Position numbers and translations under genes: made by a program. Shown here in pieces: positions 2,354-27,677 of a DNA stretch of 64,000 nucleotides. Source of the DNA: Bugula neritina (taxonomy: Eukaryota; Animalia; Bryozoa). Every line of letters starts with the position of its first letter. The first letter of the stretch is position 1. A model generated the notes under the pieces. That model saw only the letters and a program-made list of their open reading frames with translations. It was not told the origin of the DNA and did not search any database. The stretch spans positions 19,017,700 through 19,081,699 of the forward strand of contig OZ037768.1 in the NCBI GenBank assembly GCA_964035545.1, in the 5' to 3' direction.

Positions 2354-2503
2354 CTATAAGGAAGAGTTATCCTCTCTCTTGGAGCCATTAAAGCCAGGAA
2401 ACAGGTAAAGTTTTCTCATGTGAGTGAGAGTATCCCAAGCCACAACTAGCTGGCCACTGTCCAAGTCTCTGTTTACACACAGCTTTCTGACTTTAGTCTG
2501 TAC
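2354..2503 (-). CDS. Last exon of ROCO-caspase gene (caspase p10 C-terminus)
   Basis: tgtttag|VQTKVRKLCVNRDLDSGQLVVAWDTLTHMRKLYLFPGFNGSKREDNSSL*; matches the caspase terminal (S/T)TLxKxLYF motif. Confidence 0.85.
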   Translation of the reverse strand, partial: VQTKVRKLCVNRDLDSGQLVVAWDTLTHMRKLYLFPGFNGSKREDNSSL

Positions 2504-5500
2504 CTAAACACAATTATATGTAACTGTATATTCCAGGTATCTAAATTCTAGATGGATAAACACAGAAATTTAGAAACAAAACTACTATTTGAGTTTGTAC
2601 TAGCATTTCTTATCTTCTGTCATTTAGATTATGCGTAGTATGTATGATTGTAACTATAGAGTAGTGCTTTCACTGAGGACCTAAACATAGTCTGTAATGT
2701 GCAAAGCTAAAAGTGTTGGAATGTTTTGAGCAAAATCTACACTATTGTTGGCTTGGGAAAGTTCCAATAGAAATTATAATGCTCCGAAAAAGATTTGAAA
2801 TTGAACTGTAAAATTTTAGCTGTATAACCTAGCATATAATTCTTAAACTTACTTGTTTAAATATAGTGAGGGGATCGTGGTGACAGGCATGCTTATACAG
2901 TGAAGACACGAGAGCTCTAATCATTAGAGATCCGTATACAGGATGTCTCTTTGATATGAATGCTGTAACAGTCAACATATGAATGCTATATAATAGTCAA
3001 CATATGAATGCTATATAATAGTAAACATATGAATGCAATATAATAGTCAACATATGAATGCTATATAATAGTAACTATATGAATGCAATATAACAGTCAA
3101 CATATGAATGCTATATAATAGTCAACATGTGAATGTTATATAATAGTCAACGTATGAATGCTGTAACAGTCAACACTTGAAGGTTAAAACATATATGGAA
3201 GCTTTCTCATTACAATCAAACAATTTAGAATAAGTGTTAATCAAAACTAAACTGGCCATTAGCTTTTCGTCTTTTATTTGCGTTAAAGTTATACTTCACT
3301 ACTACATTAAGACAACACTCATTATTCGTTAGTGTGATCAGAATTAGACCTTAGCACTGTCATAGCTATAACAGCCATAAAATCTAGCTTAGTGTAGTGA
3401 AAAAAAGTTAAATTGGCAGCTATCTCTCTAGCAGTTACCATAACATTCTTTTATGGCATATCATTAGCTGTATATTAAATATTGTGTTGAAAAATTAGTT
3501 CGCCATTTGTCTTGTTAGCTCAAGTCCTTCTGCTATATTCAATATTTTAATAGCCGTAACTGTAAATTTTAATATATCCAACAGTTCATCAGTACATATT
3601 TTGTCATTTTTCCTGGCGTAGCTCTTATGCATACCTTTCTCTACGTAGTTTGTAAAGTCGCACAGTTTTGCTTTACATCTGTAGCAACTACAGCAGGTAA
3701 AGTTATTTATTTTTTCAACATGCATAGCCTGTGTTTCAACATTTAAAGCCACTGAATAATTATTCTTATTAAGCAGATACACTTATGTTACAAAGATTAG
3801 CTGCAAACAGTATTAATTGTTTAATGCTACGGTCACTGAGCTATAGATAGTCATCTCCAGGTGATCTAAGCCAAGGATATGTGCAAAAATATATCATAAA
3901 ATTATTTTCATTGACTAAGAAACAAATAAAGTAAGAGTGTATGCAAAACTGCAAGAGAGGAAGGCCACAACAAGCTATACTCACACTCTATGCTAGATTT
4001 CACTACTATTAAATCGTCATAGTTCAGTCTATTCATAGACTTAGCATCTTCAACCCCTGGCACTCTAGCGGGTTGTGATGACACTACTACAGCGTCTTCA
4101 TTCTGAGCTTGTCCAAGGTCAGATGCTGGGTCTATACCTTTATCACCAACATCTACCCTGGCTGTCATACGAAGTTGCATTTCAAAATGGTTACATTTTA
4201 CTAGATTGGAGAGAATGCATTTGTTGCAACTTTTAGTACAGTGGATAGTCGATTTAAACTGCTCTGCACAAAAAACCATCTTATACAAAACTGATTATTT
4301 ATCTCACACTTGCAAAACTATCTTACGTTAGCTTTGCTGTTTGATATATATAAGACAACATGTTCAATAAATTATCAATCAAAGATCGTCTTCATTTAAA
4401 ATTAATTAATATTTTAGCTCAATTAATCATTTTAAAATTCTTAGCAAAACACTTTCATCTAGAAAACTTCTTACCACCACTACAAGCTTCTAGTATGACT
4501 ATTTTTGGTTTGCCGCACATTCCAGGAAAGTTCAAGAATGTCAACAGGTCATACACGTCTGTGAGACTGAGCATCTGCAGGTCTGTACCATAAAGGTAGT
4601 TATTCATGCTTCCATGAGTCATGATGACTAATACATGACACCCCAGGTCTTCGTGCTCTTTCAGCTGTACTTCATCTTTGATGGTGGATAGAATAGCCTA
4701 GAAAATTATGTGGTGGATTACTATAAAATAAACTATAAAGTAGTTTCCCTTAGAGAGACACTTTGATTTTAGAGAGAGCAACATTCCAGCAGTGCCAAAT
4801 TTCGTATTTGTTAGTTTTCGTTTAGTCCAACTTAAAAAAGAATTTGCTATTTAACCCAAGTATTTGTTGACACTAAACTGTACATCTATCTATCAACTAT
4901 GAAGTGCGCCAATGGCATTACTGCATCATACATACTTCTGCCTTCAAGTCTGTGTGTGTTACAACCTCAAATTTTAGGCCTCGCAACACAGCAGACATAT
5001 TCTCAACATCCACATCTGAACCTTTCCTACACAAATCTGGTCTCTTATCAAAGTTCTTGTTGTTTATTATCAAAGCTCTTCCTCTTTTACGTGTCATACT
5101 GAACACCTGGATCATCAGATGTAGACAAAATGGTAGTTAAATATTTTGAAGAAACCTTTTTCCATTAGCAAAAATAAACATAATAGAAAACTTGTAAAGC
5201 ATTTGAGTCATTTGTTCATTTATTTTCTCATCACTAGCCACGTATCAGTAGCAACCAAACAAGAACCAAATTATGGACTTACCAAAAACATAACTCAAAT
5301 TACCAACAAGATTGTTATTAAAAAAATCAAGGACCACAAATGAATTTGTGAAACAATTAACACTTGCGTTGTACCAATTGTGCAAGAATGACACACAGTA
5401 GAATATGACATTTCTTTCAAACTAACATGGACAATGGAAACTTACTGCTGTTTAAAGTCTAACCCAAACACTTGTTAAGGAGATAATTGCTAGTTTGTAT

Positions 5501-8500
5501 ATGAATATAGTATATTATATTTAATGCCCTGCTACACCATGTAGGGAATACTAAAATGAAATTACCAACAAGCAAACTAATACCTTGTCAGTATTGGAGA
5601 AAAGCTTCCTTATTTTAGGACTTGTAGTTTTTTCCAGTTTGAGCCTGATCAGCTTTAGATGTTCTCCTTTCTCTCCACCAGGGTACAGATATTCATCGTC
5701 ATCAGAGAGGTCACTCAAGCTGTCATCTGCATTAACCTCATCAGCCGCTGCTGAAAAACACATTTTAAAACATTAGTCAAACCTCTGAGCATACAATACA
5801 TATTATAAAGGTCATCCTTGAATCCAAAAAAGCTACCGGCACTTACTTTTTGTTTGATCTAAAGTGATAGCTTAGAATAAAACAAAAACAAAAGAAATTA
5901 CAACAAATGCACAATGTGTCAATGCAAAGTTATGTTACAGTTACTCTTTTAAAGAAAAAGCATCAGAAAGTATATGATCATACTTGAAGTAGTGAGCATC
6001 AGCTGTTCCTTCCTCGCTGTCATTCCAGCAACAGATTTCTCTAAATTGTCCGCCTCACTCTCTGATAACACGTCACCTATTAAAATACAATTTAGATAAC
6101 ATGACTTCACCGGACGCATAAACACAGCTTTAAAAAAGTACTTATGCAACGAAATAGTATCTGCATTATTACATTGCCAATTTCAACAGTAAAATTATGA
6201 AATACTAAATTGCACGTACAAGGATAAAGAAGGGCACTAGGAATCTCATCATCGTCACATAGAGTTGTCGAGGATCCCTTGTAAAACTTGACTGGTGGTG
6301 GAGAATGTTTCAACGAGCGAAGGCACCACGGAGGGTTTACTATCTTGCGAGGATGGGGCTTGCCTAGCATCAAGCAATGAGCACAGTGAATTGAGGTGAT
6401 TGGGCGACTTGCAGTCCAAGTTTCTAAAACATGTCTGATGATATTGTTGGTTGCCGAGATGAGCCTTTTCCACATCTGGGAGATGATGGCTGTATCGGAA
6501 GATACAAAAATCAACACTTTTCTTGACTTGTAGTCATGCACTAATTGTGTATAGATTCCATCCTGGTATACATTGGCTCCATTTCTTTTCACTTTAATAG
6601 CAGCTATGTCATCAGGAAACAGTTCTAGCAGGCCAACAGTCATCTGAAGGTAGACATACTGTGGCAATGCTAGACTACTAAACATAATGACAGTCTGTAA
6701 AAGCAGTCTCTTTGGTGGAAGATAAGAAATATTAAAATAATCCGTAGCAAACTGTGGCAAAATGTACAGCAATTGATTAGCTTGATTACGTAATGGGCCA
6801 TGCAGCAACCGAAAAGTTTGAAGCAAGCAAGAAGCAATTTCCACGTTTTGGGCACCCGTGAATGAGGTTTCTTTCTCAATCAAATACACAAGCAAACTTC
6901 GTGGCATAACTCCTGTGCTTGTGTAGTGTTTCACAATATCTTCAAATTCTTGTTTATCAAGGAACGTGTCATAATCAAACCGACAGGGCACGAAGTCATC
7001 ACACCGATTCCGCCAAATACTAGAATCATGATGGTACAATATGGTTAGCAGCTTGGTCACTTCAGAAATCTTATGAAATATGCAAGGTCTAAGAACCTCT
7101 ATATCTTTGTACCACAGAATCTTGCCACAATCATGCATGTATGTGAGGATTATGTCCAGCTGACTTGGTTTAATTTGAAGGTTTTGCATCCGCAACAGAG
7201 CCAGGACAGACCAAAATGACTTGCAAGCAGTAGGTAGAGATAAAATCGTTTCATTAACTTCTTCCCAAACCATTGGCAGAGGTTTAAAAAAATGCTGACT
7301 TCTTCGAAGGAGAGACTTCTTAATTAGATCGAACACTTCGTATTCGTCATCTTTTCCTACTTCATAAATGTCAGCTTTAAGGAAGACCTCATCAGCTGAT
7401 GTTATGAAATGTTGAATTTGACAAAATTGACCGCCAATGTTTTTCTCTTCTTTGACAATCTCAGCACAAATCTGATTGGTGAGCTCTAAAAAACTTGACC
7501 GTAGCTGTTGGAACTTGACACTTTGAAACTTATCTTTATGAGTAAAAATAAGTTTAGGTGCGCCAAGAGTTGGGTTGGCGAGATAAAGATGAGACATGTA
7601 GTCAAACGCCAACCTTCTTACAGCATCTCTACTTGTTGATTTTTTAGCAAGCTCATCAAACTGGGCCATATTGACTACAATCACCGGTATGCAATTCTGT
7701 TTCAGTGTCAACTGATATGTTATGTGATACACTTCCTGGCCTCCCATATCAATGACTCGCAGTACGGTTCCCTCCACCACGACCTCTTCAACATTAAATA
7801 CTTTTGTCGTCTCATCTACGGCAGCTGCTGGACTTCGGTTGGTCAAAACTCTTTTTCTGCCAGCGTTTTGCAGAGTTTTGATTAAACTCGTCTTTCCAGC
7901 CATTGTGTTACCCAGTACAGCTATTGTAGCAAACGGAAGATTCTTACCAGAACCTTTAGCTAAGTCGATGTAATACTGGATAACAGCAGCTACCCCTCTT
8001 TGGCACACTTCCGAAGGAGGGGATGTAATAGCATCACAGCAATGCAAATTCAGTGTCTGAAGTTGAGTTAGCTGCAATATATCAGGATCTAGCGATTTTA
8101 GGGATTTGTTATAAGATAAATCTAATGACTGCAGACTACTCAATGTGTATAGAAAAGATGGTAGCCTGACGAGGTCGTTCCCATATATCTCTAAACTCTG
8201 CAGTTCCTGTAAGCTCCGCATACTGTCAAACAAAAACACTTAGTTATATCAGCTACCAAGTACCTTTAAAATGTGATGAGTTCAAACAAAAGTACCCATG
8301 TACGCCCTATGTATTGCGGTAACTATAAGCATCATCTGTGGGGCGCTTAGCAATAACTACTCGTAGGAAACCAAGAATTTGTAAGTTACAGGACTTTGTT
8401 TAAAAGTTTATTGCACGATTTTTATAACACATCCGGAAAGCAATAAAACGTTTTAGTACCAACCACAGCAGTAAAAAATTTAGGCTATATAGTTTCATAT

Positions 8501-11500
8501 GTTAATTTAATCAGATACTATGAAGTTACTCCACTAAACACGAACTCATAAAGATATGTCCATCTCATCCATAGATAGCCAAAACAAGTGTTTTGAAGTA
8601 TGAAAACTTTGAATTAGTATACTGTCATATTCTGATACTTAAGCGTTGCAAAGTTTCTGATTTTTTTCTTCTGACATATAAGAAGATAACTCTAAACTAC
8701 ATAATAGAGCAGCTTATGGGAAAATAAATTTTTATCAGCAATGCACAAAGTATACACATAATGCACACAAGGAAGTATTAACTGTAATGCATATGACGTA
8801 ATAGTTGCATACCTCTTTGGTAAAGCACCAAGACTACAGTTATTGATGTACAGCTTCTCCAATGATAGTAAAGATGTGAACATATCATCTAGTTGATTAG
8901 CGTTAAGCTGGTTATTTCCTGAGATATTTAACACTTGGAGATCTTGCAACAGAAGGACACTGAAAGCAGTAAATATTGTGATCATACTCTAAAATACTCA
9001 TGATAAGTCTATTTCCCGGCACACGGTATTATTACAATTGAGTATCACCGAAAGTCATTAAATATTCTAATTTCATAGTTTGATTTACTAGTATTACTAT
9101 CAGATTGTTTAATTGTGTGTATACCTTCTTGGCAGATTGCGGAGTCCGCAGTAACTAATGTTCAACTCCTTCAAGAAGTGCAAAGATGTGAACATATCAT
9201 CAGGTAGAATGTTATTCAGGTTGATTCCTTCCATATTTAGCACTTGAAGATTTTTTAGTCCAGATATGCTATAGAATAATAAGAAAGCTCTAAACAAATG
9301 GACACGAAAGGCTTCATTCTATAAGTCTAACCAACAATTATGTTATTAACAGAGGAGACAACAACCATCAGAGTGGGGAATCAAACTAGAATCTAGATTG
9401 TGGCAACAAATGATCAAACTACAACAAATATGTATTAGATTAAAAGCCTTGCATATCTCTTTGGTGAAAAATTAATATCATTCTACTAAACTGTGACCAT
9501 AGAATTGTGAAAGTCAAGATTTAATGCAGTTTCAGAAAATTTTGAGAAACCCAAATATAACTGTTTTAGTTGTGACAATAAATCTGTAAAACTAGAAATT
9601 TTATAAAAGCAGATAAATTTCCCCATAAAAAACCACAGTAGTATGTAGAATTATATTCTAATATCAAGTTTGGCAGACTTTATATTTTGATATAATTTAA
9701 CAAATTGCAAAAAAAGATTTTTTTTTTTCCAAAGTTCGGTATGTTCAAGGAATTTAAAGCAAATCATTCATGTGGAGCAGATACTAGTTTAATAGATTTT
9801 ATGCTCTGGCATATTAAATACAGTATTTATATTATTACAACATACAATGTAAGCTATAATTATATGAAAATACGCTGCTCAGCTGGCATGCAGGAAAATG
9901 TTTTTAACTGTGGTTCTTCCATTTGCTTTATGGTGAAATGAATAAAAGACGGCTATAACTGTTGAGATAACAATGATATATTTTACAACCTAGAGATAAA
10001 AACCTGTCTTGTTTTATCATCAACTTATCGCTACCCACAATGCATTGTATCAATGCTTTTCCTGTACTTTGTCCATCATGGCTTATACACATATAATAAA
10101 CAAATAAACGTTAATCAAATGACAACAGCCTACCTCAACAATAAATTCTGATAAAATATATTTCAGACTGTCAATCTGATTTTCTATAGATTCTGGAAAT
10201 AAAAAATAGAAAAAGCTTGCCTGCTCACCTACATAGCAGTAGGCTATGCATTGTCTTGGAAACTCATTTCATAAGTTGAAATAACTTATACATACCTATT
10301 GGGTAGAGCACTAAGTCCGCAGTAACTAATATTCAAAGCTCTCAATGACTGCAAAGATGTGAATACAGCATCTAGTAGCTTAACAGAGAGTCTATTTCCG
10401 GACAGGTTCAGTACTTGAAGGTTTCTTAGCTTAGATATGCTAAAATATAATAACTGAAGTAGACAATAGCTTGAAATAAAAAGTGATTGGGTCAAAAGGT
10501 CAGATGCTTAGAGAGGTCAGGAGTTCAGAGAATTACTAGCATAAAAAACTTGAAAATAATACGTGGAACTTTGCTAAAGTATAACAAAATAATTTCATAT
10601 TCCTTTTTTACTATACACTGATATCTAAGCATCAGGATTTAAACGTAATATTTTAAAGTACCAATTATTGTCATTTCTGCCATTTTCCTTATTCTAATAG
10701 ATTTTGTTTCTAAGTTTAAATATTAATCTGCTTATTGGCAGTTAATTATTTTTCATTCTCTAACCACAAAATTTTAAATAAATATTTCCAAATATACTAC
10801 AACCCAAGTAAGTTTTAAAGTAAAACTATCACGAACTGAGTATGTTTATCAAAATAATTTCATAGTCTATAATTCAATAATTGGAGAAGCTAAAACCCTT
10901 TGCACAAACAACATTCATACTACATGTGGTTAAAATCACAAAAAAATGCATCCATACTTGTGCAGTGAAATATAAACCTCAACACAATTCTTACTGACTA
11001 GACACTCATTGAAACTTACAGTTTTGGGTTGTTTCTAAATAAACTCTGATTTATAAATTATGCTAAAAGACTATAACTATAGTACCTGTACAAGTCCAGA
11101 TCTCCCCACATAAACACTAGCCATAGGTTCTTGAGATTAGGGAACAGAGTGTGAATGTTAGGAGGGATGTTCTGCCACAGTATAACATGTGTAACTGTGT
11201 GATGTTTACTTCTATTTCTGATCTCTTCTATAGTATAGTCTCTTGTAGGCATAACATTGTTTGTCCAGTTTTGGTCATAGGCATGTATATTGGAAGTGTT
11301 GAACCATATTCTATATCCTGTCCGGATATACATCACACCACGTTCTGTGATACTAAATCTAGCAAACTGCAAACACACAAAATATTCATTAATCTACCCA
11401 AAGCATCTTAAGACTAATACTCAATATAAAACTTTGTAATAGAAGATAAACTAGAGAAAAGATATACAAGATAGTATACCAAAAACAGAAAACACACAGA

Positions 11501-11643
11501 CAAAACTGTGAGAACAAAAAGTGAAGGAGCAAAAAGTGCCAATGTATACATAATACAGGTGAAAGTTTTTGGCTAGCATGTTGGTGGCTAATTAGCCCAA
11601 CATGAACATAATATATTATCATACACAACTTACTTTCAGCCAT
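2354..11643 (-). CDS. Multi-exon LRR-Roc-COR (ROCO) GTPase with C-terminal caspase (peptidase C14) domain, ~1250 aa
   Basis: Hand-spliced GT-AG exons with compatible phases: 11634-11643 (tentative start), ~11086-11346, 10296-10439, 9125-9268, 8813-8959, 6220-8222, 5984-6076, 5584-5750, 4936-5106, 4475-4697, 3985-4161, 2853-2962, 2354-2503 (TAG). Frame is open from 11086 to the stop. The 5' end is uncertain. Confidence 0.85.
2853..2962 (-). CDS. Caspase p10 exon of ROCO-caspase gene
   Basis: SFISKRHPVYGSLMIRALVSSLYKHACHHDPLTIFKQ corresponds to the caspase SWR...GSWFI motif; bounded by ag and gtaagt. Confidence 0.85.
2954..3174. repeat. Minisatellite, 9 units of 23-25 bp (atatgaatgctatataatagtcaac) spanning a splice acceptor
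   Basis: Tandem units read directly; first and last units are the 23-bp variant atgaatgctgtaacagtcaac. Confidence 0.95.
3985..4161 (-). CDS. Caspase inter-subunit linker / p10 start exon
   Basis: ARVDVGDKGIDPASDLGQAQNEDAVV...RLNYDDLIVVKSSIE; DLIVVKSS aligns with caspase DFLxAYST; phase 1-1. Confidence 0.8.
4475..4697 (-). CDS. Caspase p20 catalytic exon (His and Cys)
   Basis: CHVLVIMTHGSMNNYLYGTD...NFPGMCGKPKIVILEACSG; absent from the ORF track, translated by hand. Confidence 0.92.
4936..5106 (-). CDS. Caspase p20 N-terminal exon
   Basis: VFSMTRKRGRALIINNKNFDKRPDLCRKGSDVDVENMSAVLRGLKFEV, the classic caspase G-ALIINNxxF...RxGSxxD motif. Confidence 0.92.
6220..8222 (-). CDS. Large exon encoding last LRRs, Roc GTPase and COR domain
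   Basis: LRRs, then PPSEVCQRGVAAVIQY; P-loop GNTMAGKTSL; G3 DMGGQEVY; G4 THKD; COR-type YMHDCGKILWY; C-terminal CAHC motif. Confidence 0.93.
8813..10439 (-). CDS. Three paralogous LRR exons (8813-8959, 9125-9268, 10296-10439), two LRRs each
   Basis: 147/144/144 nt, all phase 2-2; consensus SIxxLxNLQVLNxSGNxL...DxxFTSLxxLxxLNISYCGLxxLPxR. Confidence 0.9.
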
Positions 11644-14930: not shown

Positions 14931-15797
14931 ATGGAGACTGAAAATGCTAGAATGCAACCACCCCCAGTAGAAGGTGAGCGTAGAAATGCTGTTAATCCTG
15001 TGAATCGTGAAGGAGAAGAAGCTTATAGACATTGCTTGAAAGCTCCCACCTTTACTGGGTCGGAAGATGTCGAACAATTTATACAAGAATTTAGAGAGGT
15101 AATGGAAGTTGCTCAATGGCCGCATAGAGTGGCCCTTATCAAATTGCGGAGGGCAGTGACGGAGCAAGCCAAGCCGTACGGAGTGGGAACGGACGTAGAC
15201 GGCATACTGGCTGCGCTGCGGGCCCGTTTTGGCACCTCCGTCATAGACGCTAGGACCAAGCTGGAGAGATTGTGCCGCACCCCGCGGACCTCGCTGCAAG
15301 AACATGCCGCGACGGTGAAGAAGCTGGCACAGATTGCATATAGCGATCTGCCAGCACAACACCAAGAGCGTTACACCTATGACGCCTTTGTCCAGTCCCT
15401 AAACGACCTGGGCCTAGACCATCACCTAAGAGCTAAAGGGATAACCAGAATAGAGGATGCCCTGAAGGCTGGAGAAGCTTACCTGTTGGCTACCCAAATG
15501 CATCGAGCACAGCGGAACCCACCAGTAGTTGGAGTCAGCGCTGCTCGGGCTACGACAGGCTCCGAAGCCCTCCCGCTGGAAGCCGAAGTGGACCGTATGG
15601 TAGAGATGCTGGGACAATTGGTAACCATTCTGGCCGGTGCTGGCCCCGGTCAGGCCTTGCGGATGCCCCCAACACCTGTGGGGCAAGGCTGGAGTAGCGC
15701 TGATCAGGACCAGGGACAGAAAGGACGACCCCAACACCAGGGGGCGTTAAACTGTCACGGCCCGCGGACACTCTCCCTCCCCGCGAGCCGCAACTAA
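14931..15797 (+). CDS. gag: Gag of Gypsy element 1 (no CCHC knuckle)
   Basis: 288 aa ORF after the PBS; capsid-type APTFTGSEDVEQFIQEF...W motif. Confidence 0.9.
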   Translation: METENARMQPPPVEGERRNAVNPVNREGEEAYRHCLKAPTFTGSEDVEQFIQEFREVMEVAQWPHRVALIKLRRAVTEQAKPYGVGTDVDGILAALRARFGTSVIDARTKLERLCRTPRTSLQEHAATVKKLAQIAYSDLPAQHQERYTYDAFVQSLNDLGLDHHLRAKGITRIEDALKAGEAYLLATQMHRAQRNPPVVGVSAARATTGSEALPLEAEVDRMVEMLGQLVTILAGAGPGQALRMPPTPVGQGWSSADQDQGQKGRPQHQGALNCHGPRTLSLPASRN

Positions 15798-16101
15798 AGG
15801 AGTATGGTGGAACACGCCGTCGTCTGTCCGTACGGACACGGCGGAACATTCTACCCGAGTGGCAGGTACCACGCAGGACTAGTAGGCCCGCACAACGGCC
15901 CAGTACCTTTTCCCTGCCACTCGCTAACCGGTTTCACCGGTTACCTCGGGAGGAGGAGCCCGCCACTGAAATGGAGCCAGAAGGCCCAGTGGAGAGGCCC
16001 AAACCCCGCCGGCACCAACCTCGCCGCCGGAAGCCCCGTAAACCACGGGTGAAACCCCCGCCGTCCTGTCAAACCAGGACAGCACATGCGGGGGGGGGGG
16101 G

Positions 16102-19100
16102 GTGAAAGTACAACCACATGGAGAGAGCTATTTCCTACCTGGAAAGGTGGCCGGCAACGCCGTCACTTTCCTGCTCGACTCCGGTTGTACTACCAACCTT
16201 CTCAGCCGTAGAGTCTTTGAGGCACTGCCCCGCCGGGACAGGGATAGAGTACGACCGTATACTGGAGAACATGGCACCTTGGCAGACGGGTCATGTATCC
16301 CCTTTTATGGTATTATCGAGCTCCCTGGGCGTGTCCGAGATCAGGCTGTACAGGAGACCTTTATCATAGGTCAACTGGAGGAAGATGCTATCCTCGGCAT
16401 GCCCTTCTTGAAGCAACACCAGTGCCGAATAGATTTTAGTAAGTCGGTGGTGCTGATGGGCGGGCGAGAACTCGCCTGTGTGGATAAGTTTGGGCGTCCT
16501 CTGGTGGGCGGTGTTCAGGTAGTTCGGAACTGCACCGTACCCGGACGCTCCAGAGCTACTATCCACTGCCGAGTGAACAGCAACCGGATAGCCAGGCTCG
16601 GGGTCGTTGAAAGCGCGCACGAAAAGATCCAACTCGCCAGTAGTTTAAACCGACTAACTGAGCGAGGGGAGGTCTTAGTGCAGTGCGTCAACCCCTTTAC
16701 CGAGCCCATTGAGCTCCCAGCTGGGTCAATGCTGGGTCGGTTCCATTCCGTCCAGGAAGAGGACGTGGGCCCGTCGCTGGGTGACGCGACGGAGGCACCC
16801 CCTCGACACCCTATTCAGGGACGAGGGGCAGTCCCGACACATCTCCGGGAGTTATACGAAACAGCCAGTGGCGGCTGCGCGAGTAACAGAGAACGCCAAG
16901 CTATGGCCAAGTTACTACGCGACTACGGTGATGTGTTCAGCAGCGGGGAGAATGACGTGGGACTGACTGGAATTGTCAGACACGAAATACCGCTGACTGC
17001 AGGGACAGTCCCTGTCCGGCAGCCCACGCGCAGGCTGGGGCCGGAGAAAGAGAAGGAGGTTAGCCGACAAGTACGGGATCTTCTGGACCGGGGACTGATA
17101 GAGCCCGCCCATAGTGCGTGGAGCTCGCCAGTCGTACTGGTCCGGAAGAAAGACGGCAGTTGGCGGTTCTGTGTGGACTACCGCAAACTCAATAGCGTAA
17201 CCATACAGGACGCCTACCCTCTACCTCGTATTGACGAGTCATTGGACGCCCTAGCCGGCAGCAAGTACTTCAGTACGTTAGACTTGCTAAGCGGCTATTG
17301 GCAGGTTCCTCTGAGTCCCGACGCCCAGGAGAAAGCGGCGTTTATCACACGGGACGATTTGTGGAAGTGGAAGGTGCTGCCCTTCGGGTTAACCTCCGCC
17401 CCAGCCACCTTCCAGAGGCTGATGGAACAAGTCCTTAGCGGACTCCATTGGAAGACACTGCTGGTCTACCTCGATGATGTCATCGTAATCTCTCCAGACT
17501 TCGAGACACATGTCAGTCGTCTGCAGGAGGTTTTCGAGAGACTCCGAGGTGCCGGTCTTAAGCTCAAACCTTCCAAGTGCGCTCTATTGCAGCCGGAGGT
17601 CAAGTACCTGGGGCACGTTGTCGGTCGAAACGGCGTGGCAACGGATCCCGAAAAGGTACGGGCAGTAGAAGACTGGGTCACCCCCCAAGACTTGACCGGA
17701 CTCCGGGCTTTCTTGGGGCTGGTAGGGTATTACAGGCAATACATACCAGACTTTGCGGGCATAGCCCAGCCGTTAAACCGGCTTACCGCAAAGGGAGTGA
17801 CGTGGCAGTGGACTCCAGTCGAACAAGAAGCGTTCGACCGCCTCAAGGGCTGCCTCCTAACGGCGCCCATCTTGGCCTACCCAGACCCCACTCTGGAGTA
17901 CATCCTAGACACAGACGCCAGTGACCAGAATGTTGGCGCTGTGCTGTCGCAAGTGCAGGAAGGCCGAGAAGTAGTAGTAGCCTACTACAGCAAGTCTCTC
18001 TCCCCCGCTGAACGAAATTACTGCACTACCCGCAAGGAGCTGCTGGCAGTAATCAAGTCAGTGAAGCACTTCAGACCATACCTATATGGCAGGAAGTTCC
18101 GGCTGCGTACGGATCATGCCTCGCTGATCTGGTTGTGCAGGAGAGCAGAGCCCTCCAGTCAGGTCGCCCGGTGGCTCGAAATCCTAGCTGAATTCTCGTA
18201 CCGGATCGAACACCGACCGGGCAAGAGACACAGCAATGCAGATGGGTTGAGTCGCCGACCTGACGGAGGTTGCAAACAGTGTCTCAACATCGAGAGGAGG
18301 GATGGAGGTCCCCCACGATGCGAGTTGGAGACGCTGGCTCATCACGGAGCACCGTTTGACTGGGATCAAGGTCAACTCAGGCAAAGAGTTGATGAGTCCC
18401 CGGAGGATGTACAAAACCTCCGCGCCAACCCTGTACTGGCCGGTAATGTTCGAGAGCTGAAGAAGCTCCAAGAAGAGCTGCCGGGAGTCGTGGCAGACAT
18501 CTACCGGGCCAAAAGGGAAGGGCGACGACCCAGCGAGGAACGCATACGACAGGGATGCGCCGAGTTCCGGCTATACTGTCAGCGTTGGGACTCGCTGCGG
18601 ATCGGGCAGGATGGGTTGCTAACCATCTCTCTAGCTGCCAGCGGCAGACACCCGGAAAGGAAGAGGGTAGTCTGCCCCACAGCCATCCGCCGTGAGTTGA
18701 TTTGGGATACTCACAAGCAGGCCCACGCAGGGGTCAAGCGAGTGATATCCAAATTACGACTCCGGTGGTATTGGCCGCAGATGGAGCGTGACGTCCGGCT
18801 CAGAGTCAAACAGTGTGAGATCTGCCAGGCCAGTAAGCATAGCCGCCCCCCTGGTGAAGCAGGACGGCGGAGGCTATATGCTGGTAGGCCCTGGCAAGTG
18901 GTCGCTGTAGACCTGGTCGGACCCATGCCCCTGACCCCCAGAGGCAATAATTGGATCCTAGTACTAACCGACCACTTTACTAGGTGGGCGGATGCTCTGG
19001 CTATCCCAGATGCATCAGCCCCAACAGTGGCCAGGGCACTAGACCAACATGTATTCTGTTATTTTGGGCTTCCCGAACAGATACACTCTGATCAAGGCGC

Positions 19101-20376
19101 TCAATTCCAGTCTCAACTGATGAGCGACCTTTGCCACCTCTGGGGAGTAAATCAGAGCAGGACCACCCCCTACCACCCTCAAGGTAACGGGGTGGTGGAG
19201 CGCAACAACCGGATGCTAGGTGATGCGCTCCGGAGTCTCCTCCTTGGACGAGGTCAAGAGGAATGGGATACGATTTTGCCGCAAGTCATGCGTGCATACC
19301 GTAGCACCCCACACACCAGTACTGGTGAGACCCCAAACCTCTTGATGCTCGGGAGAGAGACTCGTGTCCCTGACCATCTCACCTATCACGTTCCAGAGCA
19401 GGATAACTCAGTCCATGAGTATGCCAGTGAACTAGTGGAACGGATGAAGGCCGCACACGAGATACTGCGTCAACAACAGTGGAAGGTGCGGCACGAAGAT
19501 TCCGATGAACCACCCCTCTATCAAAGAGGAGATAAGGTGTGGATGGTCAATTACCGTAGGCGCCGCGGACAGGCTGATAAGCTGAAGCCTAAGTTCGTAG
19601 GCCCCTACGTGGTCGTCGAGGCTATGCCCAATCATACGTACAAGATTGAGCGCTCAGGACAGGTGTCTATCCAGAATGAGTCTCGCTTGAAACCGTATTG
19701 GGCTAGCCCTGACGGAGTGGGAGAAGCCCCCCCGTTGTTAGAGCCCAGGAGGCAGACAACGACGCGCGGGCGACGGCGGCATGGACCTGAATACGAAGTG
19801 GTCATACCGCGGGAGGAAAACTTGGTGAGAGAGGAGCGGCAGCTTTTGTCAACAGAAGCGTGTCCGCCACCGCCAAGTCTTATTCCATCACTTCCAGAAA
19901 CCGAGCCGGTTCCGGAAGTGCAAACCCCCACGGAGGGAGGGGCTCCATCCGGAGAACAAGAAGAGGTGACCACTAACGGTGAAGTAGAGACGCCATTAGA
20001 GGCCCCTACTAACGAACCGGCAAGCGTGTCACCCCCCCTAGAAAGGGGACAGCGTACGAGGAAGCCCCCACCGTATTTGAAAGACTTCATATGTGACTGC
20101 ATTAGAAGCGGCGCACATGAAAGTCTAGGGGAAAACCGTACGATAAAATGTTGGAGTTGTGAACCCCACGCAAATATCAACTTTTGCGAGGGCGGAATAG
20201 TGGGAGGAATTAATGCGCGTAAAGCAAATAGTTCCGACCTCGTGCCTCAGAAACGATGCTCAGCCTTTTCTTATGCTGACATCGCCAAAGGCAGACGTAT
20301 CTCGCAACCAGCTCCAACCTTACCAAGAACGTTGAGTATGGACATTAATACCGAGTTCCCAGGTAAGCCAGTATAA
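16102..20376 (+). CDS. pol: Pol polyprotein of element 1 (protease, RT, RNase H, integrase)
   Basis: LLDSGC, WRFCVDYRKLN, YLDD, TDAS, HHCC, DDE integrase, GPY. Confidence 0.97.
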   Translation: MKVQPHGESYFLPGKVAGNAVTFLLDSGCTTNLLSRRVFEALPRRDRDRVRPYTGEHGTLADGSCIPFYGIIELPGRVRDQAVQETFIIGQLEEDAILGMPFLKQHQCRIDFSKSVVLMGGRELACVDKFGRPLVGGVQVVRNCTVPGRSRATIHCRVNSNRIARLGVVESAHEKIQLASSLNRLTERGEVLVQCVNPFTEPIELPAGSMLGRFHSVQEEDVGPSLGDATEAPPRHPIQGRGAVPTHLRELYETASGGCASNRERQAMAKLLRDYGDVFSSGENDVGLTGIVRHEIPLTAGTVPVRQPTRRLGPEKEKEVSRQVRDLLDRGLIEPAHSAWSSPVVLVRKKDGSWRFCVDYRKLNSVTIQDAYPLPRIDESLDALAGSKYFSTLDLLSGYWQVPLSPDAQEKAAFITRDDLWKWKVLPFGLTSAPATFQRLMEQVLSGLHWKTLLVYLDDVIVISPDFETHVSRLQEVFERLRGAGLKLKPSKCALLQPEVKYLGHVVGRNGVATDPEKVRAVEDWVTPQDLTGLRAFLGLVGYYRQYIPDFAGIAQPLNRLTAKGVTWQWTPVEQEAFDRLKGCLLTAPILAYPDPTLEYILDTDASDQNVGAVLSQVQEGREVVVAYYSKSLSPAERNYCTTRKELLAVIKSVKHFRPYLYGRKFRLRTDHASLIWLCRRAEPSSQVARWLEILAEFSYRIEHRPGKRHSNADGLSRRPDGGCKQCLNIERRDGGPPRCELETLAHHGAPFDWDQGQLRQRVDESPEDVQNLRANPVLAGNVRELKKLQEELPGVVADIYRAKREGRRPSEERIRQGCAEFRLYCQRWDSLRIGQDGLLTISLAASGRHPERKRVVCPTAIRRELIWDTHKQAHAGVKRVISKLRLRWYWPQMERDVRLRVKQCEICQASKHSRPPGEAGRRRLYAGRPWQVVAVDLVGPMPLTPRGNNWILVLTDHFTRWADALAIPDASAPTVARALDQHVFCYFGLPEQIHSDQGAQFQSQLMSDLCHLWGVNQSRTTPYHPQGNGVVERNNRMLGDALRSLLLGRGQEEWDTILPQVMRAYRSTPHTSTGETPNLLMLGRETRVPDHLTYHVPEQDNSVHEYASELVERMKAAHEILRQQQWKVRHEDSDEPPLYQRGDKVWMVNYRRRRGQADKLKPKFVGPYVVVEAMPNHTYKIERSGQVSIQNESRLKPYWASPDGVGEAPPLLEPRRQTTTRGRRRHGPEYEVVIPREENLVREERQLLSTEACPPPPSLIPSLPETEPVPEVQTPTEGGAPSGEQEEVTTNGEVETPLEAPTNEPASVSPPLERGQRTRKPPPYLKDFICDCIRSGAHESLGENRTIKCWSCEPHANINFCEGGIVGGINARKANSSDLVPQKRCSAFSYADIAKGRRISQPAPTLPRTLSMDINTEFPGKPV

Positions 20377-20393
20377 GTCTTGTATTCCTATTC

Positions 20394-21467
20394 ATGGAAA
20401 CGGGCTCGATGCCAGTAGATTCTGAACTAATTCAGCAGATTGAATCAGAATTACTGGGAACCACGTTTCATGTGAATGACGATGAAGACACTGTAATGGC
20501 CGATGGTCTGTTAGACCTGGAGCTAGACACTGTTCTTGGTCAGTCCACACATGATTCATCAGTTCCTCGAGTGCATTCCAAAAGCAGTGACTCTCAGGCT
20601 AGCAACGGTCGACAGTCACTAGAATTAGGTTGTAAAGATCCACCGCGATCTAACACTAATTCTACTTTTGTAGACACACTCGCGCCCGTCTCTCCGGGCA
20701 TGCCTTCTCTAGAGATGGCGTGGGACTCAGAGCCGGCCCCAACAACTTCTACCACCAGGAAACTGCCACCCCAGTTGGAAGCAACCTCCAACTGGATTAC
20801 CCCTGCCACAGAGAGAGAGATCAGGACCCATCAAGGAGGTGAGGGTAATCGTGAATGCAACCTCTGCCAACAGCGATTCACGACCCACCGCAGACTAAAA
20901 GTACACTTGCCGCAACACTACATCACCACTTTCTGCCCTTGCGGAGAATATAGCTACAATCGTGATTACCTGTTGCGGCACCAACGTACTATGCAGTGTT
21001 ATCAAGGGCATGTCTATGAAGTAGACGAATCATCCTATCCTGCTTTTCTCAACGCCATCAAACCACTCATCACTGACTCAGCTCGGCTATCTCGCCTGGA
21101 GCAAGGCTTCCCTTCCCCGCGACCCATCATCTCTGGAGCCGCAGATAAACCTACACAGTCTGCTAACTCTCCACCTCACAGTCCTATACGCATGCCGCAT
21201 ACCTTTCCTCGTGTCGTACTACAGAGAGTAGACACAAATGCGTATACACTCCCTCCTCCTCTTCCATCCTCAGAGCGGAAACGACACAGGCAACCAACTT
21301 CCTCTCGTTCGTCCCCCTGGGCCCGTAACCTACGTGAGGTAGAAGCTAGGGCGCATGACTTGGAGCAAGAAGTGTACAGGCTGGCCCCACGAGTACAGGC
21401 AGCCTCCAGTGAACTCAAATATTTACAGGAGTCTATTAAGCGCATGAAACGTGCGGCCCGCAGTTAA
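20394..21467 (+). CDS. ORF3 of element 1: zinc-finger and coiled-coil protein (not env)
   Basis: 357 aa intact ORF between pol and PPT; CNLC-x12-H-x3-H and CPC-x12-H-x5-C; C-terminal heptad region; no signal peptide or TM segment. Confidence 0.85.
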   Translation: METGSMPVDSELIQQIESELLGTTFHVNDDEDTVMADGLLDLELDTVLGQSTHDSSVPRVHSKSSDSQASNGRQSLELGCKDPPRSNTNSTFVDTLAPVSPGMPSLEMAWDSEPAPTTSTTRKLPPQLEATSNWITPATEREIRTHQGGEGNRECNLCQQRFTTHRRLKVHLPQHYITTFCPCGEYSYNRDYLLRHQRTMQCYQGHVYEVDESSYPAFLNAIKPLITDSARLSRLEQGFPSPRPIISGAADKPTQSANSPPHSPIRMPHTFPRVVLQRVDTNAYTLPPPLPSSERKRHRQPTSSRSSPWARNLREVEARAHDLEQEVYRLAPRVQAASSELKYLQESIKRMKRAARS

Positions 21468-22275: not shown

Positions 22276-23269
22276 TGAAGTAAATTTGTGTCTGACACCA
22301 GGTGTCACTATTGACGGTAAGTAATCTCACTTAACAATGAGGGTCGGAATAGAATTCCCTTGTGCGGAAAACTAATTAAACTATCTAATACTGTTTGTTG
22401 CCAAATTATTTGCTAATGTGATTTTAATATTTTCCAGTGACTATTGATTTCTGGTGTTCGGTAACAGTGCTGAAGTGTGATAGGGACACGGCTATGGTTC
22501 GCCGATTTATATCACAGCAACTGTAGTCAGAGACAGTGACAGAAATCTGATTCCTGATGTTCGAATCGCAGAGACTCGACAGGAATTCCGCAACGCAAGA
22601 GAGTCACTACAGTGGAAAAATGATTTCTGGTGTTCGGTAACAGTGCTGGAGCGTGACAGGGACACGGCTATGGTTCGCCGATTTATATCACAGCAGCTGT
22701 AGTCAGAGACAGTGACAGAAATCAGATTCCTGGGATTTGAATCACCGAGATTCAACAGGAATTGCAGCGCAAGTAATCACCATTGACAAACCTATAGAAA
22801 CTAACCACCACTATTGCCAACTCAATAGCAACCTAATCAAAGAGCAGAGTATTTCGCAAAGAATAAAGTTTATTATATTATTTATAAGAGTCAATTATAA
22901 ACATTACAACAGGCAACAGTCGACTGACTGCTACTAAAAATTACAACTCTATTTATATCCATATTACGGACGTCTTGGAGCACAAAACGGACGTCTTGGG
23001 GTGCAACCAATTATTTACATACAAAAATTTTATAAAACTCAACAAATTTAATATAAAATTAGCATTACAACTTGTATCAACCAATCACAATATATCAAAA
23101 TTAGTTGACCTAGCTTTGAGTTAGTTAAATTATTGCCAGAATGATTTAACTTGCAGGTCCGATAAAAATCACCTTGACCTAGTTTCTATATTCACAATAT
23201 TGTTATTGAGGGCCGTCAACTTGACGCAACGTGTACTGCTCGATGGCTCTAATAATATTTTTTACTACA
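22276..23269 (-). repeat. 3' LTR of Gypsy element 2
   Basis: Direct repeat of 28569-29562. Confidence 0.97.
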
Positions 23270-26200
23270 CCATCCCCTCCGGAGATAGAATTCCGTCCCG
23301 GAATTGGACCCTTCTTAAGTCTTTTAATTGGGTTGGCAGCTTCTACTAATGCAGGAAATTCTTCATGGTAGTTACTGAACCAGTCAGCGTGTAGAATGGT
23401 TTGGGTCTCTGACTTCTTTGGCACAACTCTGTTAGACTTCGGCCAGGAGTGTACTCGATCTAGGTGGTAGTCTCCAAACCGAACAGGTTTGCGTCTTTGG
23501 CGGTTTGATCTAAAGCCAGGATCAGCTGAGTGGATTTCTTCACCATATGTTTCTAACTCCTCTATAGCTGCAGACTCGCCTTCTTGGGGATGGTCATCGT
23601 CTTTCCGGTTTACATCAACACTTTCCTCCTTGGTCAATTCCTTCATACTGGAGGTAGATGGTAATCCGTCGGTTTCTGGTTCTACATCAGTTCTATTATG
23701 TACGTCAACATCGGGTTCTGCATCTGGTAAGGCTCCGGGAGGTCTCACTACGGCTGGGTCTTCTGATAATTGGGGTGTGACAGGCAGGATCTCTACATCG
23801 TCTTCTTCCTCTGTAATGAAGCCATTGGTGACCGAGTCTTGAGATGGTATAGTGGGCAGTGGTGTTTCTGCGACAGTAGGTGGCCTTGTATCCGCTGGAA
23901 CAGGTGGGGTGGCTGCTAGTGCTCTATCCTTTTGTCTGGAGTCAGTTGATTCTACATATGCTTTGATACGCCCTTCATGTTGAACACTGTATTTGCCATC
24001 CTTTACCATACGATAAGTCTGGAACGGCAACACTTTAGTGATGGTGTAGGGCCCCACATATTTAGGACGGAGCTTAGCACCTCGTCCCTGTCCTTGGTAG
24101 TATGATTTTAACCAGACTTTATCGCCTTCCTTGTATGGACTGTCTTCCTCTTCAGGTTGAGGCATCTCCATCTGTTGTTGTCTCAACCGCTCATGGACTT
24201 GTTGTAGCCTCTCTTTGAGTTTATCCACAAACTCTTCCACTGGTAACTCCTGTGGGTCTTCTTGCTGGAACAAAAGATCTGCAGGCAATTTCACCTCCCT
24301 GCCTAGCATCAGAAAATTTGGGGTCTCGCCGGTGATTCGGTGTGGTGTAGCTCGAATTGTCCGCAGGATTTGTGGAACTAGCAAATCCCACTCCTTGTGA
24401 AGAGATTCGGCTAGAAGGGCACGCAGGGAATTTCCTAGGGTTCTGTTTAGCCGCTCGACCACGGAATTTCCTTGTGGGTGATACGGTGATGATCGTGTCT
24501 TATCACAGCCCCACAACAAACAGCACTCCTGAAAGATTTGGGATGTAAATTGCTTTCCTTGATCAGAGTGGATGCATTCTGGGACTCCAAAGTAGCTGAA
24601 GACCCGCTCATCAAGCACCCGGGCGACAGTTGTGGCTGTCCCATCTTTTATTGGGATAGCGTCATACCACCGGGTGAAATGGTCTGCTAGTACCAGTATC
24701 TGTGTGTTTCCTTGGTTTGTTTCAGGAAATGGTCCACAGAGGTCAATTGCAAGGATCTGCCAGGGGCGTCCGGCATGAAGATGATTCTGGGGGTTGGAGG
24801 ATCGATGAGGGACAGGCTTAGCTTGCTGACACTGTTGACAACCCTGAACTTGTCGTCTAATTTCGGCTGACATTCCAGGCCAATACCACTTTTCTTGTAC
24901 ACCAAGTAACGTTTTGTTGACTCCTAAATGTGCCTGTTTATGGATGGATTCTACTACTTCACTTCTCAATGCACGAGGTAAAACAGTCACCATGTGACCC
25001 TCCCGGCGGTGCCTCATTTTTATCATCAGGCGCCCTCCAAGAAGGCTGAGCTCTTCCCACCAGCGAAGTAGTGCTTTAGTCTCTCCGCCCACTCGGTCCA
25101 CGTTAGGCTTCACTCCTTTCTGAAATGCGCGATAAACTGGACCAATGACTGCATCTGTTTCTTGGGCTTGACGAATGGTGTCCATTTCAACATTCATCTG
25201 TGGCACAGCTTTAACTGCAACATGAGTAACCTCCGCAGCAACTTCCACTCTCTGGTCATTCACCGCGTTGGGTACTACACTCATGGGAACGTGGGTCATT
25301 GGGGGCTTCAACCATTCTGACCACTCTTGTGGCTCAGTCTTCTTTGGATGGAAAATATGGAATTGTGCAGCCTGTACAGTCGTTATTCCTTGCACTATGT
25401 CCGTCTGGGTAGCAGTGGAGTGGAATCTTGGTTCTTTGTTTGGTAAAGCAGTCTGGGAAAGGTTGATCTTCTTCTCAGGTGATGGAAACATTCGGTCACA
25501 CTGTTTACATTCTTTGCATATCTGCCGGCTCAGTCCATCAGCATTGTTATGTTTTCGCCCTTTCCTATGCTGTATCCTGAAGTTGTATTCAGATAGCGTT
25601 TCCAACCATCTTGCCAATTGTCCTGTCGGGGCAGGGTTTTGAAGCAGCCAAACAAGTGAAGCATGATCAGTCCTTACAAGGAACTGACGGCCATAGAGTT
25701 GAGGCCGAAAATGGCGGACCGCTTTAATTATTGCCAGTAACTCCTGTCTGGTGACACAATAGTTGCTCTCTTCGCTGGAATACATCTTAGAGTAGTAGCT
25801 TACCACCCTCTCCTCGCCACCATGGATTTGGGACAGGACAGCCCCGGTACCGACTTGACTAGCATCTGTATCAAGTATGAATTCTCTAGCATAATCAGGG
25901 TATGCAAGAATAGGGGCAGTAACTAGATGAGCCTTGAGTTTGTTGAAAGCCAATTCGCACTCCTTATCCCATTGAAATCTGGAATCTTTTGAACATAACT
26001 GGCTGAGGGAACGAGATACCTCGGAATACCTAGGGATAAACCGTCGATAGTACCCACATGTACCCAGGAATGCCCTGACATCTGTCTTATGCTGGGGTCG
26101 AGGCCACTCCTGTACTCTCTGTACCTTTGAATCATCTGTTGAAATACCATTCTGACTGACAACGTGGCCTAGATACTGGACTTGTTCGGCAAATAAGGTG

Positions 26201-27648
26201 CACTTCTGAGGCTTTAATTTAAGTCCAGCAGCTGTTAGACGCTGGAAAACTTCAGCAAGCCTTTCAAGATGGCTATTCATATCTTTGGAAAAGACTATGA
26301 TGTCGTCTAGATATATTAGGACTGTTTGCCAATGTAACCCTCTCAGGACAGTCTCCATCAATCGTTCAAATGTAGAGGGCGCTGAGGTTAACCCAAAAGG
26401 CAGGACTTGCCACTCCCACAAGCCGGACCTAGTAGAGAATGCCGCTTTTTCCTTTGCTGATTCTTCCAGTTCTACCTGCCAATAGCCACTAGTTAGATCT
26501 AGAGTGCTGAAATATTTGCTGCCTCCCAGCGCATCTAAACTGTCATCTATACGTGGGAGGGGGTAAGCATCCTTGTGTGTACTGTCATTAAGTTTGCGAT
26601 AGTCAACACAGAAGCGCCAGGTACCATCCTTCTTCTGTACTAATACAACTGGTGAACTCCATGCACCATACCCTTCACGGATTAGTCCTTGGGCCTTCAA
26701 TTCTTCCACCTGTCTTTCAATTTCTTCTTCTTGGACAGGGCCATGACGATAAGGTCTCTGTTTGAGGGGTCGAGTCCCCGACACTAGAGGGATTTCATGT
26801 TTTACTAGGTCTGTGCGACCTATGTCGTATTTGTGGGCACTAAAAACTCCCCGGTGTCGCCTCAACATCTGTGTAGCTGCTTGTTTTTCTAATGGGGGCA
26901 GATGCTGGCACCACTTCTTCACTTCTTGTTCAAATGCATCTGGGGTAGCACCTTCGGATTGCGGAGATTCAATGGACTCTACAGTACAGCATCTGGTGAG
27001 CACTTTTCCAGGTGGAATGGTGACTGGCTCCGTTGTATGGTTAAGCATCCTCACATAGATCTTTGGTTGCTGCTGAGGATGGTATAGTGCACTGGCGATT
27101 ACCACCCCATCAGTGTAAGTTTTTGACTCCAAGAAAGCATGTTGACGATTCCATGGCCGAACTATGCGGGCCTCCACAAGACTCTCTGCACGGGGCGGCA
27201 GAACTGTAACATATTTAGCCTGTACGTTGGCGTGGAAAGGCTGCCGTCGTTCATCACAACAGCTTATGGTTTGTTCTCCCATCCGGAACAAGCAATTCGA
27301 GAAATCTATGTAACAGTGAAATTGTTCGAAGAAATTGAGACCCAGTAGTATTTGGTTGTCTAGATTGGCTACTAGGAACTGATGAGTGCAGATAGTAGAA
27401 CCCAGTTTAAAGGTGAGGCATGTGGTACCTTCCAGTTTGACACTTTTTCCATCTGCGAGTGTGCAGTGCCCTGTTGTAGGAATGAGAGGCGTATAACAGT
27501 GGTCGGCAATTTGACGTATTACTGATGTAGGTAGGATTGACTGTGTGCACCCACTGTCAAGTAACATAACCTCATCCTGGGTTCCAATCTTGACTGGAAC
27601 ATAGTAGGCGGTTCTCTGCTTCGTTAACCGGACATGTGTTCGACCCAT
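23203..27648 (-). CDS. pol: Pol polyprotein of element 2
   Basis: LLDSGC, WRFCVDYRKLN, YLDD, TDAS, HHCC, DDE, GPY; 1481 aa uninterrupted, stop lies inside the 3' LTR. Confidence 0.97.
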   Translation of the reverse strand: MGRTHVRLTKQRTAYYVPVKIGTQDEVMLLDSGCTQSILPTSVIRQIADHCYTPLIPTTGHCTLADGKSVKLEGTTCLTFKLGSTICTHQFLVANLDNQILLGLNFFEQFHCYIDFSNCLFRMGEQTISCCDERRQPFHANVQAKYVTVLPPRAESLVEARIVRPWNRQHAFLESKTYTDGVVIASALYHPQQQPKIYVRMLNHTTEPVTIPPGKVLTRCCTVESIESPQSEGATPDAFEQEVKKWCQHLPPLEKQAATQMLRRHRGVFSAHKYDIGRTDLVKHEIPLVSGTRPLKQRPYRHGPVQEEEIERQVEELKAQGLIREGYGAWSSPVVLVQKKDGTWRFCVDYRKLNDSTHKDAYPLPRIDDSLDALGGSKYFSTLDLTSGYWQVELEESAKEKAAFSTRSGLWEWQVLPFGLTSAPSTFERLMETVLRGLHWQTVLIYLDDIIVFSKDMNSHLERLAEVFQRLTAAGLKLKPQKCTLFAEQVQYLGHVVSQNGISTDDSKVQRVQEWPRPQHKTDVRAFLGTCGYYRRFIPRYSEVSRSLSQLCSKDSRFQWDKECELAFNKLKAHLVTAPILAYPDYAREFILDTDASQVGTGAVLSQIHGGEERVVSYYSKMYSSEESNYCVTRQELLAIIKAVRHFRPQLYGRQFLVRTDHASLVWLLQNPAPTGQLARWLETLSEYNFRIQHRKGRKHNNADGLSRQICKECKQCDRMFPSPEKKINLSQTALPNKEPRFHSTATQTDIVQGITTVQAAQFHIFHPKKTEPQEWSEWLKPPMTHVPMSVVPNAVNDQRVEVAAEVTHVAVKAVPQMNVEMDTIRQAQETDAVIGPVYRAFQKGVKPNVDRVGGETKALLRWWEELSLLGGRLMIKMRHRREGHMVTVLPRALRSEVVESIHKQAHLGVNKTLLGVQEKWYWPGMSAEIRRQVQGCQQCQQAKPVPHRSSNPQNHLHAGRPWQILAIDLCGPFPETNQGNTQILVLADHFTRWYDAIPIKDGTATTVARVLDERVFSYFGVPECIHSDQGKQFTSQIFQECCLLWGCDKTRSSPYHPQGNSVVERLNRTLGNSLRALLAESLHKEWDLLVPQILRTIRATPHRITGETPNFLMLGREVKLPADLLFQQEDPQELPVEEFVDKLKERLQQVHERLRQQQMEMPQPEEEDSPYKEGDKVWLKSYYQGQGRGAKLRPKYVGPYTITKVLPFQTYRMVKDGKYSVQHEGRIKAYVESTDSRQKDRALAATPPVPADTRPPTVAETPLPTIPSQDSVTNGFITEEEDDVEILPVTPQLSEDPAVVRPPGALPDAEPDVDVHNRTDVEPETDGLPSTSSMKELTKEESVDVNRKDDDHPQEGESAAIEELETYGEEIHSADPGFRSNRQRRKPVRFGDYHLDRVHSWPKSNRVVPKKSETQTILHADWFSNYHEEFPALVEAANPIKRLKKGPIPGRNSISGGDGVVKNIIRAIEQYTLRQVDGPQ

Positions 27649-27677
27649 AGGATTCAGTTCGACAGTGACTGGGTCAT

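Follow-up and report, generated by a model that had tools for sequence, protein, structure and literature searches.

Gene structure at the locus

The window, i.e. the whole stretch of 64,000 nucleotides of Bugula neritina DNA analysed here, contains a gene of 13 exons on the minus strand (11643-2354). All exons are AG/GT-bounded (GT-AG introns) and phase-compatible, and the joined frame consists of 1265 codons without an internal stop. The predicted product has the domain order LRR-Roc-COR-caspase. Pfam domain searches were run exon by exon on the spliced model, while the joined frame was used for the frame check. By exon, Pfam identifies LRRs, Roc and two Peptidase_C14 pieces. The features are, in the order of transcription:

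11634-11643, minus strand: first coding mini-exon, Met-Ala-Glu, with a phase-1 donor; predicted from paralog L034, in which a phase-1 donor likewise follows the same three codons, close to the 5' side of the N-cap exon
11086-11344, minus strand: N-terminal cap exon in front of the LRR array; acceptor placed by phase, 54% (L034) and 37% (L035) identity to paralogs, no Pfam match
10296-10439, minus strand: LRR exon 1, 144 nt, phase 2-2, two repeats; Pfam and frame model
9125-9268, minus strand: LRR exon 2, 144 nt, phase 2-2; Pfam, RNA and frame model
8813-8959, minus strand: LRR exon 3, 147 nt, phase 2-2; Pfam, RNA and frame model
6220-8222, minus strand: large exon with three LRRs, Roc GTPase, COR-A and COR-B; Pfam Roc, AlphaFold, Foldseek and RNA
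5984-6076, minus strand: linker exon 1; RNA joints
5584-5750, minus strand: acidic linker exon 2; RNA joints, conserved in type-A paralogs
4936-5106, minus strand: caspase p20 exon 1 (S1 Arg1016); Pfam Peptidase_C14 (E 4.6e-11) and RNA
4475-4697, minus strand: caspase p20 exon 2 (His1074, Cys1118, Glu1116 replacing the usual Gln); Pfam (E 8.3e-10), PDB and RNA
3985-4161, minus strand: Asp-rich intersubunit linker and first p10 strand; RNA, sequence comparison and frame model
2954-3162, no strand: intronic 25-bp tandem repeat, 8.4 copies, the last unit extending into the p10 acceptor
2853-2962, minus strand: caspase p10 exon 1 (S1 Arg1185); 46-54% to Watersipora p10 (E to 2e-11), caspase-1 alignment E 0.03
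2354-2503, minus strand: caspase p10 exon 2 with the stop codon; 72 genomic matches, matches Watersipora C-termini

The sequence-only reading had proposed that a 710-aa ORF covering LRR, Roc and COR does not end the gene, and the exon model confirms this. The ORF consists of the 2003-nt exon 8222-6220 plus a read-on into the intron, with a GT donor at 6219. Seven phase-compatible, stop-free exons follow on the 3' side (6076-5984 to 2503-2354), and five further exons lie upstream of the large one. The caspase p20 and p10 motifs quoted in that reading are all present in the 1265-aa frame. A candidate 24-nt microexon at 5870-5847 was dropped, since RNA contigs skip it.

Transcript evidence

To check the exon joints we aligned the contigs of four runs (X1, X3, X4, X15) to positions 3300-9299. 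In RNA contigs of three studies (X1, X3, X4) we see the joints 9125/8959, 8813/8222, 6220/6076, 5984/5750, 5584/5106, 4936/4697 and 4475/4161, not all of them in every run. These cover the gene from LRR exon 2 through p20 to the intersubunit linker exon, and include the 6220/6076/5750/5106 junctions on which the proposed fusion depended. One contig of 1292 nt (X3 record 18) joins COR (from 7167) through both linker exons to the first p20 exon. A single spliced transcript links the LRRs to p20, and with the joints and the bridging contig the single-chain LRR-Roc-COR-caspase fusion holds. A Roco transcript ending at 6107 was looked for, and the contigs instead splice on into the caspase, although rare isoforms may escape contigs.

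The contigs of X15 run through introns and none of the predicted joints is found among them; this run therefore behaves as DNA and serves as a DNA control. For 10296/9268 and 3985/2962 the RNA support consists of short overhangs, and that at 3985/2962 is 8 bases long and matches the adjacent repeat as well. The RNA joints stop short of the two most 5' introns and of the last intron, which lie outside 3300-9299.

The long RNA contigs diverge from the window by about 2-7%, while the nearest paralog has 67% protein identity to the window gene, which indicates that the contigs represent another allele of the same gene. Between the alleles the LRR exons diverge by about 6-7% and the Roc-COR exon by about 3-4%, and at the start of LRR exon 3 (8954-8959, minus strand) the RNA allele differs in most of the six bases.

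The Roc-COR core

The Roc domain is found by Pfam (PF08477) above the cut-off. Its G1, G3 and G4 motifs are intact, with the P-loop at aa 339-347, DxxG at aa 393 and T-H-K-D at aa 462, and are at least 90% conserved across 75 homologs. COR follows directly after Roc, with a weak Pfam match for COR-A (E 0.056). The AlphaFold model of the large exon has a pLDDT of 91.5, and its top Foldseek matches are LRRK1, the C. tepidum Roco and LRRK2, aligned over about 680 columns with E to 1e-23. According to the model, the large exon is predicted to have a Roco fold with intact GTPase motifs. A NACHT or NB-ARC switch was not found in the protein by Pfam on the exons or by fold; the switch domain is Roc. 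The protein may work like an NLR but belongs outside the NLR class.

The caspase module

The p20 subunit contains the catalytic dyad His1074 and Cys1118. Both S1 arginines (Arg1016 and Arg1185) are present, while the pentapeptide is EACSG, with the S1 Gln replaced by Glu1116, i.e. two of the three S1 residues are kept. Due to this replacement the Asp specificity and the activity of the caspase are only putative. The S1 Gln position varies across the family, being Glu in the clade of the window gene, His in a type-B copy and Gln in the Watersipora kin. None of the 14 pentapeptides read at loci of paralogs and homologs has lost the catalytic Cys.

The best PDB matches of the p20 catalytic exon are caspase-8 and CED-3. 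Pfam does not pick up the two p10 exons, which are too short for it; both match the p10 of Watersipora proteins. The first aligns weakly to the Ser-Trp-Arg-His motif of the caspase-1 p10 (E 0.03), and the last one, compared alone with solved structures, has no caspase match. The Watersipora caspase domain, used as a stand-in for that of the window, folds like animal caspases with a Z of about 20, ahead of MALT1 and metacaspases. The caspase is of the animal p20/p10 type, and judged by sequence comparison the predicted p10 subunit follows the intersubunit linker, as in C14A caspases. By hand alignment, a Trp in the exon 2354-2503 presumably stands at the dimer-strand position, which is Phe in caspase-9 and Val in caspase-3; this would fit a monomeric zymogen.

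No death-fold match, i.e. no CARD or DED prodomain, was found in the ten exons scanned. The linker exons are acidic and, at 31 and 56 codons, too short for a CARD or DED.

The gene belongs to an expanded family

The paralog count that the sequence-only reading had called for is at least 76 Roc-COR exons of this kind in the 216 Mb genome, and the related Watersipora has the same fusion. Pairing by eye from the coordinates, we find a same-strand caspase His-Cys exon downstream of all 76 Roc-COR exons, for 71 of them within 5 kb and for the rest within 16 kb. Many of the paralogs form tandem clusters on C1 and C6. For about 60 more caspase His-Cys exons, clustered on C1, C2, C4, C7 and C9, there is no partner among the listed Roc-COR exons; they may come from unscored Roco genes or from caspases of another family. 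In the same genome an exon-by-exon search, which can miss split domains, gives one weak match for NACHT and no match for NB-ARC.

The DNA of the paralogs was read at 30 short loci, and full gene models cover few of the paralogs. The number of LRR exons varies between paralogs, being three in the window gene and four in L034. Paralog L035 is without the p10 S1 Arg. In L034 (13529-14489) the intersubunit-linker exon is duplicated between p20 and p10.

The LRRs diversify and the caspases are exchanged

For the 12 concave-face LRR codons of 25 close paralogs we obtain a dN of 0.57 and a dN/dS of 1.13, with a locally high dS (0.51), while the dN/dS of Roc and COR among the same paralogs is 0.21-0.24. 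These are rough pooled estimates over non-independent pairs and not a site-model test. The numbers support a fast-varying LRR concave face and with it a receptor-like pattern of evolution.

Two caspase types are found among the paralogs, with 86% and 36% identity to the window gene in the first p20 exon. In the C1 cluster the identity of the Roc-COR exons is 85.3% between the caspase types and 85.2% within type A. On the Roc-COR tree the caspase type shifts four times, at least two of them on well-supported branches. The window gene itself has a type-A caspase on a Roc-COR that is just 66% like that of either type. Two caspase types on near-identical Roc-COR cores point to effector swapping among paralogs, and the simplest reading of the sequences is that the effector modules were exchanged by recombination.

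Comparison with known systems

Two full-length fusions are present in the Watersipora subatra RefSeq set (XP_067947674.1 and XP_067948342.1), and the same domain order is found on two ENA contigs. In another Watersipora paralog (L031, 26246-36428) we found the first caspase exon and none further in the next 10 kb, i.e. this gene may be truncated. Databases label the Watersipora kin "MFHAS1 homolog". MFHAS1, LRRK1/2 and DAPK1 have the Roc-COR core in common with the bryozoan gene, but they are without a caspase, have a low copy number, and carry a kinase or no effector.

The same domain order is found in bacterial AP-GTPase-caspase systems. Bacterial LRR-AP-GTPase(Roc)-COR-effector proteins are predicted counter-invader conflict systems, in which at least 24 effectors, a caspase among them, are listed for the C-terminal slot, the LRRs are fast-evolving, and several paralogs occur per genome (PMC8195603). 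In contrast to these, the bryozoan gene is spliced, falls among animal Rocos by its Roc-COR, and carries a caspase of the p20/p10 type seen in animals.

In Branchiostoma about 12 models have the full LRR-Roc-COR-caspase order, e.g. XP_002614028.1. Their architecture is identical to that of the bryozoan gene, but they form a separate Roco clade and have the canonical QACRG. Among the amphioxus LRR-Roc-COR proteins (P0169, P0207, P0245-P0267) the same slot holds a caspase, an OTU, a GT4 glycosyltransferase or a death domain, and these forms are mixed in the tree; this variable C-terminal slot resembles the bacterial variable-effector systems. Amphioxus "LRRs-caspase" hybrids were put forward in 2008 as shortcuts from recognition to apoptosis (PMC2575513). 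That paper makes no mention of Roc-COR, and its hybrids are only putatively identical with the Branchiostoma models found here. A 916-aa ENA protein (P0268) has LRRs and a caspase and no Roc match.

Bryozoan, amphioxus and bacterial proteins form separate clades in the Roc-COR tree, which was made by a quick method, has long branches and leaves out P0130. All 12 bacterial rows lie on one side of a 100% branch, and the bryozoan clade lies among the animal Rocos. A recent transfer from bacteria is rejected, since the bryozoan Roc-COR lies apart from the bacterial clade in this quick, long-branched tree. The separate clades, together with the mixing of caspase and non-caspase forms in amphioxus, favour independent fusions or repeated swapping.

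A caspase with a ROC prodomain is named briefly for Owenia fusiformis (PMC11463336). Like the bryozoan gene it is lophotrochozoan and Roc-containing, but it is a single gene, LRR and COR are unmentioned, and its kinship with the bryozoan family, likened by description, is putative. The Owenia Roco that we found in databases (CAH1789022.1) is without a caspase. Brown-algal LRR-ROCOs are an expanded family of candidate immune receptors with diversifying concave sites (PMC11378527). They share with the bryozoan family the expansion, the LRRs on repeated same-phase exons and the diversification of the concave sites; however, they have one repeat per exon versus two in the bryozoan gene, and no caspase, although a few have another peptidase.

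In the literature searched, which was without subscription papers, we found no description of the bryozoan Roco-caspase family and no paper with a functional test of any Roco-caspase. The sequence-only reading knew of no characterised animal protein of this architecture. This stands for function, but the architecture itself is already known in bacteria (PMC8195603), in Owenia (PMC11463336) and in amphioxus and Watersipora models, from computation alone. The bryozoan expansion and any mechanism appear to be undescribed.

Proposed function and alternatives

By analogy, we consider it fairly probable that the gene encodes an NLR-like, adaptor-free death or immune receptor for patterns or danger, i.e. 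a cytosolic LRR-Roc-COR-caspase. This reading is favoured because of the intact frame and motifs, the RNA joints and the bridging contig, the Roco fold and the caspase linkage in all 76 paralogs. The diversification of the LRR concave face, the variable number of LRR exons, the swapping of caspases and the near-absence of NACHT and NB-ARC also argue for it, as does a similar design having been proposed as a bacterial counter-invader (PMC8195603) and as a brown-algal immune receptor (PMC11378527). Counted against it are the S1 Glu, the polarity of the C. tepidum Roco, see below, and a dN/dS obtained from 12 codons.

Initiator caspases are activated by induced proximity. In the proposed mechanism, the binding of a ligand at the LRRs would shift the Roc nucleotide cycle and the monomer-dimer balance of COR, and the COR shift would bring two tethered caspase domains together. 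The paired caspases would then cleave themselves at the Asp residues of the linker, leading to cell death or inflammatory proteolysis, a job done elsewhere by an NLR, an adaptor and an initiator caspase. The ligand sensing and the dimerisation-driven activation of the caspase are both inferred. The scheme, in which a sensor and a nucleotide switch control a caspase activated by proximity, is the same as in the NLR inflammasome and the APAF-1 apoptosome, as an analogy only. In contrast to these, the bryozoan protein has a GTPase and not a STAND ATPase, no CARD, DED or PYD, and the caspase in the same chain, and it is probably a dimer and not a wheel.

In the solved C. tepidum Roco, GTP goes with the monomer, and GDP or an empty nucleotide site with the dimer (PMC5714945). 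By analogy, the dimer-competent state of the bryozoan protein would perhaps be GDP-bound or nucleotide-free rather than GTP-bound, and activation may come with hydrolysis or with loss of the nucleotide. A simple order of GTP binding, dimerisation and death is therefore doubtful.

A rather unlikely alternative is that the caspase is active and Roco-gated, but with a non-microbial role in colony allorecognition, polypide regression (the brown-body cycle), metamorphosis or LRRK2-like sensing of membrane or organelle damage. Bryozoan zooids regress and regrow, and colonies meet their neighbours, which counts in favour of such roles. The diversification of the LRRs fits self/non-self recognition too, and the gene is expressed in three unrelated studies. 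However, a tandem expansion beyond 76 copies in which LRR faces vary and effectors are swapped is rare for developmental genes. We also regard it as unlikely that the window copy is a weakly active caspase or one of altered specificity, acting as a scaffold, a decoy, a c-FLIP-like heterodimer partner of family members or a bait for pathogen effectors. The variation at the S1 Gln position described above, between Glu, His and Gln, and the loss of the p10 S1 Arg in L035 count in favour of such a role; against it, the window copy has His1074, Cys1118 and both S1 arginines, and the Cys is found in 14 out of 14 pentapeptides. That Roco and caspase are separate genes, or that the main transcript stops in the intron at 6107, is very improbable, as the COR-to-p20 spliced contigs of three studies, the two full-length Watersipora RefSeq fusions and the 76/76 paralog linkage outweigh the several Watersipora models that end without a caspase, the loss of rare isoforms from contigs and the end of the RNA evidence before the p10 junctions.

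If the adaptor-free receptor reading is true as proposed, the gene would encode an animal death receptor that needs no adaptor, and its family would be the main set of intracellular sensors in a phylum with little-studied immunity. Its protease activity would also be a simple readout for a question raised by LRRK2, i.e. which nucleotide or oligomer state of Roc-COR switches on a C-terminal effector. More tentatively, and on balance doubtfully, bryozoans may have largely replaced NLR/apoptosome signalling by about 100 single-chain Roco-caspase receptors, whose LRR faces diversify, whose caspases differ in specificity and are exchanged through recombination, and in which caspase dimerisation is under the direct control of the Roco nucleotide cycle. 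If so, animals would have a third way of activating initiator caspases, at which amphioxus would have arrived in parallel.

Neighbouring sequence in the window

At 810-1140 on the minus strand, 1.2 kb downstream of the gene, a histone H2B-like ORF has a weak Pfam Histone match and then leaves the histone frame; it is probably a pseudogene. Upstream of the gene lie two Gypsy-like retrotransposons in opposite orientation (14931-21467, plus strand, and 23203-28514, minus strand), with gag-like and long pol ORFs. The first of them has a third ORF of 357 aa, for which there is no Pfam match. A Gly/Arg-rich ORF with RGG repeats at 61074-61568 (minus strand) is probably the terminal exon of a gene for an RNA-binding protein.
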